This document shows positions 19,437 to 26,357 of a stretch of 64,000 nucleotides of DNA, one piece after another. The stretch lies in assembly GCF_000143415.4 (NCBI RefSeq), contig NW_003314314.1, positions 625,771 to 689,770 of the forward strand, written 5' to 3'. The notes beneath the pieces are model-generated. The model was not told where the DNA came from and did not search any database. It saw only the letters and a list, made by a program, of their open reading frames with translations. Source of the DNA: Selaginella moellendorffii. Lineage: Eukaryota > Plantae > Lycopodiophyta. Positions within the stretch are counted from its first letter, which is position 1. The number at the start of each line of letters is the position of its first letter. The position numbers were made by a program, and so were the translations under genes.

Positions 19437-20519
19437 TCATCTCTTCGATCGACGCTCCGGGGTTCTCGACCTCCGACGATCGTAGCCACGTCTTCTTTGA
19501 TCATAATCGGGGTACCAGCGGTGATCTCTTCCTCTTTTCCTGCCATAATCCCGGTTATCCTTCCTTCGACGATCGTCACCACGGTAATTCTCCCTGATTC
19601 GATCATAGCCATCGCCATTCTTGCTTCTAAGATCACTGCCAAGATCATGATCACTGTCCCTTCTCGTAGCATCTCTCTTTTTCCTCTCGTCCTCCTTGAG
19701 AAACTCCACGATCACCATCGTCTTGTTATCATTGGACTGTGCTCTTGCAACGATCTCCTTCAGTGCCTCAAAGTTTTTCTCCTTGAGCGCCTTGCTGATC
19801 TCTTCCCGGCACGATTCCACATACTTCCTCTCCAGGCCATCCGACGCAAGAACCAAAAACTCGCAGCCATCACAAATCTCCTGCTCCAAGATCTCCGGAT
19901 CAGCGACCACTGCCTGTTCTTCCCGGCTCTTCTTTGGATTGTCCTTGAACTCAAAGTCGCCGATCGCGCGTGTCACTGCCAGAGTGCTCAGAGATCCATC
20001 CTTGCTCACCACCCCGTCATGGACGACGCACTTGGATTTGCGAGCTCGATCGGCTTCGTCCAAGTTGCTTGGGACGTGATCCTTGGTCAGGTGGATCATC
20101 TGCTTGTTCTTGACGAGGCTGCAGTAGGAATCACCAGCGTGAGCCACGAAAAATCTGCCCTCTTTCACAAGAGCCACCACCGCCGTCGTTCCAGACACCG
20201 TCGATCCATGCCCGGCGAATCCCTCGTCAGTGCTCAAGAACACGCTGTGCAAGCTCTCGCGAAACTCACCCTTTTCGAAGCTCTCGTCGCGCACCAGGAG
20301 CTTGAAGAGATTGCTGGAGCAATACCTCGCGGCATCATCCCCACCGTGGCCATCGAAAACCCCAACCAGCGAAACGCCCGATGGCAGGCCTGTCGCGATG
20401 GCGCAGCCATCCTCCATCTCGCGCCGGCGCCCCTGATCCGTCACGGCATAGATTCGCACAAGCCGATCCTGCGCCTTGTGGAGTCCTCGCGACTGTCCAC
20501 CAAAGCTATCGTACGCCAT
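19437..20519 (-). CDS. Protein phosphatase 2C (PPM family), intronless, with Arg/Asp-rich C-terminal tail
   Basis: Motifs GRRREMED, GVFDGHGG, AHAGDS, DHVP, TRAIGDFEFK, LASDGL and DNKT are all present. Confidence 0.92.
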   Translation of the reverse strand: MAYDSFGGQSRGLHKAQDRLVRIYAVTDQGRRREMEDGCAIATGLPSGVSLVGVFDGHGGDDAARYCSSNLFKLLVRDESFEKGEFRESLHSVFLSTDEGFAGHGSTVSGTTAVVALVKEGRFFVAHAGDSYCSLVKNKQMIHLTKDHVPSNLDEADRARKSKCVVHDGVVSKDGSLSTLAVTRAIGDFEFKDNPKKSREEQAVVADPEILEQEICDGCEFLVLASDGLERKYVESCREEISKALKEKNFEALKEIVARAQSNDNKTMVIVEFLKEDERKKRDATRRDSDHDLGSDLRSKNGDGYDRIRENYRGDDRRRKDNRDYGRKRGRDHRWYPDYDQRRRGYDRRRSRTPERRSKR

Positions 20520-20631
20520 TTCTATTAATGAAGAACCCTAAAAACCACAAGGCCAAATTTATAAGGCAAAGCCTTTTCGTTTACTAGAATATCCACCGAT
20601 TTAATCTATACAAGCTCGGTAACATCGACAT

Positions 20632-22412
20632 CTATACAAGCTCGGTAATATCGTCGTCCACGTCCATAGAAACTACAGACTCGCACCATTGATCAACGAG
20701 GACGTGATCCTGGAAAACTCTCACTCGTTTTGCTGCAACATTTGGAACTGCGTCGAAATCTAGCCTGAAAAACCAAAAAGAGAAGTGTAAGCAAAAAGCG
20801 AGAACAGGGAAACGAAAAAACTTACAATCTGGAGACCTTGTCTCTCGAGATCAGGAGCTTCTGCTGCTGCTGCTGAGACCATGCAATGGCAATAGCTTCC
20901 TGAAGCGAATGAGTAACTTCTGCTACAGAATCCCCCACTGCCGAATCGAGGAGCAAAGTCGACCAGACTGGTACCACCGATCTCAGTAGGATGTCGAGGC
21001 ACAGCTTTGCTACCTGGCGATTTTTCACCTGGAATGGTCTCTGTTTCTTAAAATCCACATAGAACATGGCAGCAGCCTCGATGAATTTGCTCACTTTCCC
21101 TCCTGTCCGCTCGAGCTCAACGTTGAAACCGCCCACGAGCTCCAGTGCTGATGCAACTTCGCGCAAACTGAGCCTGCTAGCAGAAGAGTGTGGAACTTCA
21201 CAAGGTCTTGGAGACTCAGGTAGACCGGAACCAAAACTTTCCTCCCGACACTGAGTTTGTAAGCACGAAGGTACTGTAGCTTCTCACTGTAAACGGCCGC
21301 TTGATGGTTGTCGATTAAGGAGGGAACCATGGCCCTGTCAAATAGATACAGTCGATTAGACAAAGATATCACAAACAGCAAGCGCTTACTGCTTTAATCC
21401 GACAGCTGCTCTTCTTCCAAGAAGAATTCCTGTCCGCAGCGTATCAATCAAGAGCGAGGGATCCGGTCCATGGAAGCAGCAAAAAACTGTGTAGCGATCG
21501 ATACCTTCTCCATTTTCCGAGCTCCAAAAGAAGCTTGGCAGCAGAGAAACCCGTCGCAAGAGGAAGTATAAGCATAGCCGACTCAAGCGACCATTCCCAT
21601 CCAGGAAAGGATGGATCTTCTCCATACCGTGTACAAACGTGCCTGCTGCCGAGATTATTGCTTCGTCAACTCCACGGGAAGCCTCGATGCGTTGCTTCAG
21701 CTCTGAAAGTATCACGTCCAACCTCTCCTCCAGCCGAAGGCATGGCATTCGCTTCTCAGGACCATCTTCGAAGCTCACGAACACATCTTTTGTTCTCCAC
21801 TTCCCTCCGCCAGGGATAAGCATCTTGTGCCACTCCTGCAACAGTTGAATCGATAGAAACTCCCTGCCAAGAAAAGTGAGCAAAGATCTACAAAGCTTGC
21901 ATCTTTGTTATCTTACTCCTTGACAGCCGCTCCCATGCATAGCTTCAAAGCGTTGTAGAATGCGCGTAGCTCCTTGTACTGCTCCGTCTTGAAACTCAAG
22001 TCGCCATAGATTGCTCCCACTGTTTGCTCGAACGAAAACGCTAAAATGTCGCAAAACCGGTTAGATCTCACTGTTGCGGAAACTGAATTGCGGCCTCTTT
22101 GTCTCAATAGCCCTGGAAAGAATAAAAAAGACACTTCAGAGAATTGGAAATTCTTGGCGATCGACGCACCTGAAAACGCTGCCAGTTGTTCCGAGTAGAA
22201 CTCCCTACTGCACAAGAAATCCTAGCCGACGCTCCCGCCAATCCTGTCATGGGTCGATCGATCGGAGAATGTAGATAGTGAAAGCTCACCTTGACGAAGA
22301 AGCCGCATCAAGCCCTACCTTCGGCAAAGCCGTGGTGAACGAATAGCGCCGTCACGCGAAAAAACGCTTCCTCCTCCATCGCTCCAACCCTAGCAATACG
22401 CTTCTCTAGCAT
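20632..22412 (-). CDS. Spliced Fic/Fido-domain protein: intact Fic domain followed by a degenerate Fic-like domain
   Basis: IHPFLDGNGRLSRL at 21578-21613. Frame-preserving GT-AG introns at 21864-21916, 21335-21389 and 20765-20825. A second repeat reads AAAMFYVDFKKQRPFQVKNRQVAKLCLDILLR. The 5' exon and the junction near 21175-21290 are uncertain. Confidence 0.75.
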
Positions 22413-22520
22413 GAAGTAACTCGCGCGGGCTTCACTAGCAGCCGTTGGATAACCCAAGCTGGAGCAATCTTTATCGTTAATACGTTTCTGCAGAATAAAA
22501 CCGTTGGATCGATTTAGTTG

Positions 22521-25500
22521 TCAGCTGAAGCTGTGTAAGCCGTTGATTGCGCTGTGGTAGGGCTTTCTCACGCTCGACACGAGACCTCTTCTCCTACAGT
22601 CTTGGAGAAGAGCTTTCCAGTCGGGATTTCTTTCGAGCGTCCTCGCATTTCCCACGACCCAGAGCGAAAACTTGGCCCTCGTCAGTGCTACGTTCATGCG
22701 CCGGACGTCCGCGAGGAATCCCACACCAGCTTGAGAGTCTCCAAACGAAGCACGCACTGTCGAGAGGACGATGATGTCTGCCTCTCGCCCCTGGAACGAA
22801 TCCACCGTGTTTACGTCGATCCCCGAGTGTAAACTCCTCATGTTTTCTTGGAGAACTTTTCTCTGCTCCTGGTATGGAGTGATCACTCCAATCCTCCCGG
22901 GGCGAACTTCCTCCGGATACCTGGAAAAACCGGTTGATATCTTTCTAGCAACTTCGTGAAGGAATGTGGAGTACCTCTCTTTGAGAACACGAAGGAGTTG
23001 AAAGATAAACTCTGCCTCGTCGGGATTGGTAAGCGACTGCATCGAACCTGGCCTTTCCTGCCCGTCTCGAATGTCAAAAAACCTGTATGGCTCGAAACAC
23101 CTGTGCAATTCCAATTGAAACAGTCTTCTTTTCATGAATTCAAAAGCTCAAGCATACGAACCTTTCGCGGTGGAAGGTAGCGCTTCGGTTCCCATGTAGA
23201 ACAGTGCTTCCATCTTTGAGCTGGCCACCGTAGTAGTGTGTCGATGGAAAGCTTCGAATCTCAGGGTGCATGCGATACTGTGCAACCAGAACGAGAAAAC
23301 TTGATAAAATGGAAAAAGACTTCCAAAATCAAAATCAACCGACCTGCGTTGTTAACATGCTGACCGGATAGCCATGCTTTTGGAAACGCTCAAACATACT
23401 GCAGTCAAACAGGAGCCTTGATGCTGGAACCGAGAGAACAGTCGCTGGTAGCTGTTTAGGATCCCCAATCTGAAAAACTTCTAGTAAATATCTTTCAAAA
23501 TACTCCCGTAGCACTTTACCAGGATGCACTTCCCACGAGTCGCTTTCAACAGCTGAAGCGGTATCAGAGTTGATGGTTCCACGGCCTAAAAGTTCGTTCG
23601 AAAGGCGTCATTCAAACTCTGATTTTTCATCCATACCTGTGCCGCTTCATCGATGATCACAGCGTCGAACAGCATCTCCGCGGCCTGCGCGTCTCTCGTT
23701 GCAATGAATTCCATCAAAGTCGAGTAAATGTGACCTCCGCAGCCGCTTAGCGTCGTCAGTACCACATCTGCTTCTCTTAAAACTTCAAGCTTCATGGCTT
23801 GTTTCTTCTTTCGGTTTGATCCCATAAGAAAGCCATGCTCGCGATTTTCCACCTTGATCAGCTCTGATAAAAGCAGTCTCTGCTGCTCTTGAAGACCTGC
23901 TAGCTTGTCAAGTTTCGGGATCCCATCCTGACTTTCCACCTCGGCTGGAGCAGCTAACGCTTGCATATTACCCAGGACTTCATCGAGCTTGGATCTTAGT
24001 TCCTGTGGAGAGTGCGCATTGTGTACCCCTGCATTCTCAGCCATTCTCTTCGCCACCAGCCGGTCGATGTGCACAGCCATTGCCTGGGAATGCACCCTCT
24101 TCGTGTCCCCAACGCGGACAATAGAGGGCCAGTAAGTCCCTCCATCGTAGTTGTAGACGCCATGCTTTGAGATTCTTGTCACCAGTTCGTCCACGGCTGC
24201 GTTGGACTGAGCGCAGACAAGGATCCTTGTAGCTTTCAGCTTATCTCGGAACTTAGTTTGGTGCTTATCTGTTAGCACGTCTAGCATCTCGTGTTCCTCG
24301 GCTTTGCCAGCCTCCTCGTTTGCATGGGCCAGCAATGCGCTCACAATGCCGAGGATTGTTCTTGTCTTTCCAGTTCCTATTACAAGCAAAGAAAAAACAA
24401 TTGAATGGTTTATATCAAGAGAACGCGAAAGCCGTTTACCTGGTGGCCCTTGTATGAGAGAAATCATCTGGTCGGCGACAGCAGCGATAGAGCTCAGCTG
24501 ACTCTCGTTGTACTCGCGTCTAAGCTTTGACCGCAGTTGTGGTGGAAGGCTTTGAGTTCTTGATATTTCTCGTGGAGGAGAAGCCGAGAGTATTGTTTCC
24601 AGTAATGGAAACAAGTGCATCGCCGCCATAGCCTGCTGCTCGCGGATGAACGTCGTCACGGACGTAAGCTTGTTCAAATGCCACGTACTTTCCGTCACTA
24701 GCATCTCTCGCAACTTGGAAAGTCTTTCGCAGCTGTGAGGAAGATAAACCTTGACGAGAAGGTTGTTTCTTTTCTCAACCTGCAATGCAAAGAAATTCTT
24801 TTAGAATGCATCAAGCTCTGGAGCGTTTACTCATCTTGCCGATCATGTGAGAAGTCCGAGCTGGATCACGTAGAAGTATCAAATCGTTCTCTGCGAGTTT
24901 AACGGTGTGGCCGTCAAACTCCACAAGGTGAAAGTAGCCTTCCTGCCGCAAGGAAAACGCGGTGACAACGTCGGAGCGCGACAAATCCATTGTCTCGAGA
25001 GACCTTTCAAGGTGTGCCTTGAACTCTTCGAAGCAAAGCGGCCGGAAGATCTCTAGATAATGCTTGTAGCTTTGAAACGTCAATGGAACTTCCAGGAGCT
25101 CCTCCGAGTGATCTCCGTGCATGCTCCAGATGTCTAGCGATAGAACACGCTTGTGCCATTCGTCCAGCATCGCTGGAAACGCAGCTCGATCATAGAAGTC
25201 TTGCTGGCCTTCCCCGACCTTGCCCTCCAAGCGTTGCTTCTTGCATGATGGAACATCTTGCGACACAGGTCTCTTTTTCCGGTCGGAGGCCACCTCGGGT
25301 TTCGCACTCGCCGTCTCTTCGGTGGCCGTCTTCACACATTCAGTCATCGCCTCTTGGATGACCACCTCCTTGTTGACACATTCTTCGTCGGTCAGGTCGA
25401 GTATAACGTCGTTCTCTGTTGATTCGGACGAGGATACCGTTTCATCGAAGATCTTCACAAGCTTTCTCAAACCATGGAGAATAATCCTCTGATCCGCGTT

Positions 25501-26357
25501 CCTACAACAAATATATAAAAATGGTTAAGCTCAAAGCTAGCATTCATCCGCTCACCGAAAAAGTGCCAAACTTTCGACAAGCTTTCGAGAAGCATTGTTG
25601 CCTGAGAGAAGCTCCATGATCTCCTGAAAGTTAGAGATAAAGAGAACTGGAAGCAAGAAAAACATCACGTACCGGATGGATTTCTGGATTCAAGGCCAAT
25701 GTATTCTCGGCATAGCGCATGACCAGCATTAAGATCTTTCTGGCTTGATCATCCTGGAAACCTTCTGGGTACATGAGGATCTGTATGGAACAAAAGGAAA
25801 TAAATGAGAAAAGTAGAGAAACAAACACTTGCCTCGAAAAGAACACACAAGCCTTCGCGATCGATCGGCTGGAACTTCTGTAAAGTCCGCCGCAAGGGAG
25901 ACATCACCCTCGCTCGATCCAGATCCCGAAGAACATCCAGCAGCGGCTCCACTCCCGGAGAAAACTCTTGCACGTAGAAATCCTTTGCCGCGTAGTAATG
26001 GCAAACACACTGGATGCATCCGCGCAGCGGCGAGGAGAGCTTCCTCCACAAGCTCGGGAGACCCCCCCAGCGCGATCCAGGGGTGTAGAAGCGCAAGGGC
26101 TCCAGGAGCTGCCACACGACGTGCTGGAGGCCGGGCGCGCACCACAGATGCGCGCCATCGGGGAGCTTCTCCACGAACAAGAAGGCATCGGCAAACCTGC
26201 GAGGAGAAACCCTGATCGATCGACCGCGAGAAAGCGAAATATTTCCCCCAAGAAAAAGCACCCACCATTCCTGCTTGAGAATCTCTTGCTCGTGGCCGCG
26301 GAGATTGTAGAGATCTCGCCAGCGCTCCCACAGCGCCCTCGCGCTCTCGTGCTGCAT
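22521..26357 (-). CDS. SEN1/senataxin-like Upf1-family (SF1) helicase, At1g16800-like, multi-exon
   Basis: Motifs QGPPG|TGKT, CAQSNAAVDEL, DEAAQ, GDPKQLPATV, TVDSFQGRE and RRMNVALTRAK. The N-terminal W..FADAF..HLWC..CIQCV region matches the plant Sen1 N-terminus. Confidence 0.9.

Follow-up and report, generated by a model that had tools for sequence, protein, structure and literature searches.

According to two reviews, plants and fungi have no Fic proteins (PMC4854385; PMC12409994). We found no paper linking Fic or Fido with Selaginella; the one publication that mentions both Fido and S. moellendorffii is a proteomics study of Artemisia. An initial annotation of the DNA likewise knew of no characterised land-plant Fic enzyme. 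The 64,000-nt stretch of Selaginella moellendorffii DNA analysed here (the window) carries a spliced gene with a Fic domain at 20633-22563 on its minus strand. The initial annotation interpreted this gene as a plant AMPylase in which a second, dead Fic domain acts as a built-in inhibitor or dimer mimic. The question is whether the mRNAs of the locus can encode such an enzyme. All coordinates below are positions in the window, and all features of the Fic gene lie on the minus strand.

Genomic setting and public annotation

Over positions 6173-28027 the window, read as its reverse complement, is identical to S. moellendorffii scaffold GL377618.1, with 0 mismatches in 21,855 nt; a 576-residue ORF of the window is recorded on this scaffold in assembly GCA_000143415.2. 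The Fic gene is flanked on the same strand by an SF1 helicase (AAA_12 match), whose ORF (stop at 22523-22521) overlaps Fic exon 1 with its 3' end, and by the ORF of a PP2C phosphatase (19437-20519, minus strand). In the public annotation a single gene with a product of 1811 residues spans 26357-19437, and Pfam matches on this product include AAA_11/AAA_12, Fic, and PP2C. No separate entry for the PP2C ORF was recovered by exact protein look-up because the ORF has been fused into the 1811-residue model. The Fic domain of the locus is already present in the databases, inside this very probably chimeric model, which was left out by the length window of a word-indexed protein search with the Fic exon that found nothing.

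Transcript structure and expression

Nineteen runs contain sequence of the locus, and four were compared with positions 20300-22700. RNA contigs X1, X2, and X4 come from three studies, and X24 is a raw RNA run of which about 12% of the reads were used. The contigs are assemblies from which rare variants are dropped, and the runs probably represent one clonally propagated genotype. Intron ends were placed by moving the contig joints one base, which gives GT-AG borders on the minus strand. By this approach, five GT-AG introns of 46-61 nt were defined from X1, X2, and X4.

Exon 1 as observed occupies 22290-22563 and is contiguous in X1 (22289-22563) and X2 (22289-22700). In the major form, found in X1 and X2, the GT-AG intron 1 is 46 nt long (22244-22289); in X4 the acceptor lies 22 nt beyond this one, so that the intron measures 68 nt (22222-22289). 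Exon 2 (22170-22243, beginning at 22221 in the X4 isoform) is separated by the 57-nt intron 2 (22113-22169; X1, X2, and X4) from exon 3 (21917-22112), which encodes the region N-terminal to the Fic core and holds an ATG at 21936. The Fic core itself is in exon 4 (21390-21863), between intron 3 (21864-21916, 53 nt) and intron 4 (21335-21389, 55 nt; X1 and X2). Exon 5 (20826-21334) contains a degenerate second Fic repeat, and beyond the 61-nt intron 5 (20765-20825; X1 and X4) the X1 contig supplies exon 6 (20633-20764), the last observed. The initial annotation had proposed GT-AG introns of 53-61 nt; this size class holds for four of the five introns, the remaining one being intron 1 at 46 nt (68 nt in X4), and the extra small 5' introns that it also proposed are not used in the RNA. 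The spliced joints show the contigs to be derived from RNA and the gene to be nuclear and spliced, which rules out contamination.

Expression of the Fic gene is low. In X24, no reads fall on the Fic exons compared to 5-10x on the adjacent helicase end, and contig depth in X1 and X4 is 3-9 on the Fic exons and 29-30 on the helicase. The X2 contig is unbroken from the helicase into the Fic exons, indicating either overlapping transcripts or the presence of Fic exons on read-through helicase RNA. The Fic-PP2C junction (20381-20623) has no contig coverage. Two alleles are present at the 3' end of the helicase, and one contig ceases to follow the window sequence at 22493; given these differences, the other haplotype may also differ at the Fic locus.

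The first Fic repeat

Exon 4 matches Pfam PF02661 with an E-value of 5.5e-12 and 46.8 bits (cut-off 24), covering profile positions 2-93 of 93. The catalytic motif HPFLDGNGRLSR (21613-21578) is the sole Fic motif in the window and fits the consensus HxFx(D/E)GN(G/K)R as HPFLDGNGR(LSR), with the second Arg present. Upstream of it in the gene are the flap element GKWRTKDV in exon 4 (21805-21782) and a further Fic element, LSIQLLQEWHKML (21856-21818). An AlphaFold (AF2) model built from a 28-sequence alignment has a pLDDT of 84.5 and places a hairpin at residues 26-38. When this model was compared to the PDB by Foldseek, the best 50 matches were all Fic proteins (FICD, VbhT, and Bep effectors), with TMq up to 0.67. 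Judged by its sequence and predicted fold, the first half of the gene encodes a true Fic domain whose catalytic signature is complete, and AMP transfer is its predicted activity. The complete motif and the preceding Fic elements reported in the initial annotation are thus upheld.

The complete motif, the flap-like GxxRTxDV, and the predicted fold are shared with Fic/Fido proteins such as FICD/HYPE and VbhT, at an identity of about 20% to the solved Fic proteins. The locus differs from them in its interrupted ORF. For the inhibitory helix motif (S/T)xxxE(G/N), the only regex match in the true frame is SENGEG, 31 residues after the His; it is not conserved in the paralog described below, which has SVDGNS. 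The pieces encoded by the upstream exons have no match to TPR, which sets them apart from FICD/HYPE, or to any other Pfam family, and the exon-3 piece has no NCBIfam match. No partner antitoxin gene is evident.

A degenerate second repeat

Exon 5 begins in the Fic frame with the start of the second repeat, AMVPSL...LLLAGS (21333-21169), and continues in another frame with its core, SRLSLREV...RPFQVKNRQVAK...LLR (21178-20981). Local alignment gave a score of 51 for the in-frame start against residues 62-101 of the first repeat and a score of 66 for the out-of-frame core against residues 141-198. Neither score was reached in any of 2000 shuffles, and the two alignments are collinear. By hhalign, the core matches a Fic alignment that includes repeat 1 at 91%, with an E-value of 1.1e-6 over 55 columns across the catalytic loop. 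These alignments support the tandem degenerate second Fic repeat as real, as had been proposed from the DNA alone. In the counterpart of the catalytic loop, RPFQVKNRQVAK (21005-21040), the segment RPFQVKNRQ keeps the P, F, and N of the motif but has other residues in place of its His, its Asp, its two Gly, and the Arg after them. The loss of the His and of GNG was recognised in the initial annotation, and the Asp, the Arg, and the flap can be added to what the repeat has lost.

Repeat 2 was undetected (E 0.2) by a Fic profile built without repeat 1. Searches of Pfam and NCBIfam returned nothing for it, and a word-indexed search among proteins of 84-266 aa found no homologue. In the proposed fold check of each half, the first is a Fic fold by Foldseek, and the single-sequence AlphaFold model of repeat 2 alone has a pLDDT of 48, too low to be informative. 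The frame of repeat 2 is open for 196 codons, including across intron 5, before it is closed by a TAG in exon 6 (20634-20632); this is matched in 1 of 5000 shuffles. The 131 codons past the Fic stop are also open (17 of 5000 shuffles). Open frames this improbable suggest that repeat 2 was translated until recently, and if so, the ancestor of the locus would have been a Fic-plus-pseudo-Fic protein.

Interruptions of the reading frame

The spliced mRNA has 321 open codons in the Fic frame, counted from stop to stop (22221-21094), and the frame is closed by a TGA at 21091-21093, before the core of repeat 2. The underlying frame break lies within repeat 2 at 21155-21186, where the same DNA contributes to both frames, as LLLAGS (21186-21169) and as SRLSLREV (21178-21155). 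At this point about 18 codons matching the flap element of repeat 1 are missing and the frame changes. Contigs X1, X2, and X4 are collinear with the genome over 20826-21334, with 0 mismatches, 0 gaps, and no joint near 21175. As the RNA is unspliced and unchanged across the break, the TGA at 21093-21091 terminates the Fic frame, and what remains of repeat 2 lies outside that frame. The initial annotation had noted that its two domains could be joined in frame only by a frameshift near 21175 or by a splice such as 21389 to 21174. The frame break is real, at 21186-21155, and the splice is absent from the RNA. In the observed RNA the two halves are therefore not joined in frame.

The 5' part of the gene is also interrupted. 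Exon 1 carries ATG 22412 and ATG 22379 of a 34-codon ORF, which a TGA at 22308-22310 closes 7 codons before the end of the exon, in the RNA contigs as in the genome. The X4 isoform places exon 1 in the frame of the Fic domain, and this TGA is then the sole interruption from ATG 22412. The major isoform puts exon 1 in a different frame and includes, in exon 2, an in-frame TAG (22224-22222) directly before the Fic frame; this TAG is missing from X4, in which exon 2 starts at 22221. The peptide encoded by exon 1 and the X4 form of exon 2 aligns with an ORF upstream of the paralog with a score of 38, which 12 of 3000 shuffles reach; at the DNA level, exon 1 has no significant similarity to the paralog (score 24, with shuffles reaching 32). 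The resemblance of the exon-1 peptide to the upstream ORF of the paralog suggests that the TGA at 22310-22308 sits in former coding sequence.

The first in-frame ATG of the open Fic frame is at 21936 ("MGAAVKE"), codon 77, and is preceded by five upstream ATGs, one of them out of frame and only 4 nt before it. In the alignment to VbhT, query residues 7-105 correspond to VbhT residues 60-158, and a product initiated at ATG 21936 would probably lack about 50 residues found before the aligned core of Fic proteins of solved structure. The donor at about 22320 put forward in the initial annotation is not used in the RNA, and no combination of splice sites seen there gives an uninterrupted ORF. The observed mRNAs contain no ORF that runs unbroken from a start codon across the conserved regions.

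Relatives and origin

Relatives were searched among 1.84 billion representative proteins, of which only two score below 1e-10. The best relative, and the only close homologue, is SELMODRAFT_413999 (EFJ25212.1, D8RRB0_SELML; 146 aa) on scaffold GL377587.1, with 45% identity over matched stretches by phmmer (E 2.5e-18) and 41% over 175 residues when its locus was compared by tblastn. The two loci have short introns and frame disruption in common and are collinear through the N-terminal region, the Fic core, an LPxF(F/L)W segment, and the first helix of repeat 2. The region encoded by exon 3 is conserved (ILAFSFEQTVGAIYG in the window and FLAFSLRQTVAIIFG in the paralog), and the first helix of repeat 2 is kept in both (EKLQYLRAYKL versus RTLQYGHAYAKAI). 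The paralog differs in its catalytic motif, HPFADANGRVGQ, which has lost the second Arg, and in its introns, having none at the position of intron 3 and one after the motif. Its frame stops about 30 residues into repeat 2, and no further remnant of that repeat follows. The motif and the conserved downstream part of the paralog are in different frames, with the break in a T-run right after the CLYF codons, and the public model obtains its ORF by skipping the motif. On their sequences, then, both members of this small subfamily are disrupted. The paralogous locus has no helicase upstream. On its opposite strand there is an unannotated Fic-like ORF with HPFVDGNGRTGR.

The best matches outside Selaginella are double-Fic proteins of 574-617 aa from Heterostelium (PPL_00220), Dictyostelium, Balamuthia, and the chytrid Borealophlyctis, which match the Fic domain of the window at E-values of 5e-11 to 5e-7 and 34-39% identity. 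Five of seven such proteins have the full catalytic motif in both domains, whereas the second repeat of the window lacks it. A profile of the seven matches only the Fic domain of the window, at profile positions 419-537 (their C-terminal domain) with an E-value of 1.6e-13, and gives an E-value of 0.44 against repeat 2. As the profile matches only the first repeat, and at the C-terminal domain, the duplication in Selaginella is independent. A horizontal origin, raised as possible in the initial annotation, would have to be judged from amoebozoan and chytrid matches only marginally better than those to bacterial or metagenomic Fic proteins, over a short domain with identities of 25-39% and with unlabelled metagenomic proteins as the majority of matches. 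Tandem double-Fic proteins are also present among metagenomic sequences.

Interpretation of the locus

Taken together, the data make it probable that this locus is a copy, transcribed and correctly spliced but disrupted in its frame, of a Fic gene confined to the Selaginella lineage: either an expressed pseudogene or a gene on its way to loss. This reading takes in the observed Fic domain, introns, transcript structure, internal duplication, and break positions. The ancestral product would most likely have combined a helical N-terminal region and a Fic domain competent for catalysis with a tandem Fic-like repeat that had already lost its catalytic residues. In the sequenced genotype, its translation would be blocked by the TGA in the first coding exon, by the dominant splice form, which shifts exon 1 out of frame and includes the TAG, and by the deletion-associated frame break in repeat 2, which ends the Fic frame at 21093-21091. 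Under this reading no functional protein is likely to be made from the locus, and the ancestor was probably a two-repeat protein.

The locus resembles transcribed pseudogenes of plants in its spliced, low-abundance transcript, its premature stops, its frame break, and the many ATGs upstream; its paralog is disrupted too. It differs from them in keeping long open frames and a perfect catalytic motif, so any decay would be very recent. The perfect motif, the 321-codon open frame, and the accurate splicing at all five introns run counter to a pseudogene. With the frame of repeat 2 and the codons beyond the Fic stop still open, the disablement would be recent or some translation may continue. An intact second allele may also exist, since the RNA runs probably represent one genotype and rare variants are dropped from the contigs.

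Among the alternatives, a functional single-domain Fic protein is unlikely, though likelier than the others. Translation would run from ATG 21936, or from a non-AUG codon within exon 2 or exon 3, to the TGA at 21093-21091, giving a Fic domain with a short helical C-terminal tail and leaving the remainder of repeat 2 as a young fossil within the 3' UTR. Such a product would account for the intact motif, the confident Fic fold, and the open 321 codons in a gene that is spliced and transcribed, and both paralogs keep the first helix of repeat 2 and end soon after it. It would have to be translated, however, from a very weakly expressed mRNA that offers no in-frame ATG before codon 77 and has five upstream ATGs, including the one out of frame 4 nt before; starting at 21936, it would also lack the N-terminal region conserved with the paralog, and the paralog is itself frame-broken right after the motif. 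The two-domain enzyme of the initial annotation, with its dead domain as inhibitor or dimer mimic, now seems improbable, as it would require a splice not seen in the RNA, frameshifting on the ribosome, or a second allele that is intact. Its premise that repeat 2 is truly Fic-derived holds, and the repeat-2 frame, improbably open for 196 codons and kept across intron 5, suggests that it was coding until recently and that the two-domain architecture probably held for the ancestor. For the present gene, the Fic frame ends at the TGA at 21093-21091, and no splice repairs it: there is no joint near 21175 in three runs, whose contigs equal the genome there, the splice from 21389 to 21174 is unseen, and the 5' ORF is broken as well. 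Repeat 2 further has no homologue among proteins of 84-266 aa, an E-value of 0.2 with the profile lacking repeat 1, and an uninformative single-sequence fold.

The public model, taken at its word, describes one 1811-residue protein in which an SF1 helicase, a Fic domain, and a PP2C phosphatase are fused, and we regard this as highly improbable. A single public gene does cover 26357-19437 with matches to all three parts, the X2 contig is continuous from the helicase into the Fic exons, and in the X4 isoform the helicase, exon-1, and Fic ORFs share one frame. The helicase stop (22523-22521) and the exon-1 TGA (22310-22308) are nevertheless retained unspliced in the RNA contigs, which contradicts a helicase-Fic fusion, and the fusion is also opposed by a 3- to 10-fold fall in depth from helicase to Fic exons, the lack of any contig over 20381-20623, and the absence of an upstream helicase at the paralog locus. 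A helicase-Fic read-through fusion was accordingly rejected as unsupported, and the evidence suggests three genes: a helicase, a Fic relic, and a PP2C phosphatase. The chance that the sequence is bacterial contamination, or a very recent transfer from bacteria, is close to nil. Fic is mainly a bacterial family, and many of the weak matches are to bacterial or metagenomic Fic proteins, but the gene has five spliceosomal GT-AG introns confirmed by RNA, lies between plant genes on a 1.4-Mb scaffold, has a diverged paralog on another scaffold, and finds its best non-Selaginella matches in eukaryotes. The RNA-confirmed introns and the plant gene setting refute contamination, and together with the identity to the S. 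moellendorffii assembly they vindicate the initial view of a plant nuclear gene.

A more far-reaching proposal, which we put forward as speculative and rather unlikely, is that Selaginella evolved, independently of the amoebozoan double-Fic proteins, a protein combining an active Fic domain with a flap-less and His-less pseudo-Fic domain, of which this locus would be a very recently disabled copy. If this is true, an intact copy, whether on the alternative haplotype or in a different Selaginella species or accession, would be the first Fic enzyme from a plant to carry its own pseudo-enzyme partner. As the mRNA described here cannot encode the proposed enzyme, the present copy is probably not the one to study.

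The analysis of this locus as a relic between two other genes has practical value in correcting the public annotation, both for the chimeric 1811-residue helicase, Fic, and PP2C model here and for the motif-skipping model at the paralog. Any Fic gene in Selaginella also corrects the picture of Fic-free plants drawn in the reviews. Read in this way, the locus shows the Fic family in S. moellendorffii to be undergoing birth and death, and it keeps the trace of a Fic-plus-pseudo-Fic architecture that may be found intact in relatives.

Gene models and transcripts

The public annotation of scaffold GL377618.1 places a single gene model of 1811 aa on the minus strand at window positions 19437-26357, taking in the SF1 helicase along with the Fic and PP2C loci, and its product has Pfam matches to AAA_11/AAA_12, Fic and PP2C. 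In the RNA contigs the helicase stop codon is retained and unspliced, and the 1811-aa model is therefore very probably chimeric. At 22290-22523, the helicase ORF and the Fic ORF of the X4 isoform, which uses an alternative intron-1 acceptor, lie in one common frame with the 70 open codons past the helicase TGA, a stretch that contains the exon-1 ORF; the three are set apart by two TGA codons only. This shared frame is probably a coincidence, at roughly 5% by a rough estimate. The PP2C ORF (19437-20519, minus strand) is a single exon of 360 aa with a C-terminal tail rich in Arg and Asp; its closest separately annotated relative, SELMODRAFT_416013, has only 37% identity.

Two alleles were found in RNA runs at the 3' end of the helicase (22533 and 22625). 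The G>C change at 22533 is present in the raw run X24 and in X1 and is absent from X2, and G>A at 22625 is present in 4/4 RNA runs. One X1 contig agrees with the window at 22493 and above only; on the side towards the Fic gene, 48 of its letters differ and have no match anywhere in the window. Around this point, the structure of the other haplotype may be different. At the opposite end of the Fic gene, a 19-nt direct repeat with a period of 26 nt (20604-20648) duplicates the last codons and stop (…TELV*) of the frame encoding the degenerate second Fic repeat, and the X1 RNA contig ends within its first copy, at 20633.

Fic relatives and internal duplication

The only close relative of the window Fic gene in a search of 1.84 billion representative proteins, SELMODRAFT_413999 on GL377587.1, has a public model (146 aa; L001:5995-6640) that omits the stretch encoding HPFADANGR. 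At the DNA level, this motif is read in one frame and the conserved region downstream of it in another; the frame breaks in a T-run immediately past the CLYF codons. Head-to-head with this locus and between called genes lies an unannotated Fic-like ORF (L001:3455-4066, minus strand) in which the HPFVDGNGRTGR motif is intact and LPMFFWS comes after it; this ORF has 27% identity to the window Fic over 170 residues.

Three matches to the window Fic domain from the protein search (P0034, P0064 and P0043) are tandem double-Fic proteins that keep the Fic motif in both repeats; the metagenomic sequences encoding them are probably bacterial. Double-Fic proteins with both motifs occur in metagenomic sequences, Amoebozoa and chytrids, so internal duplication of the Fic domain is recurrent.
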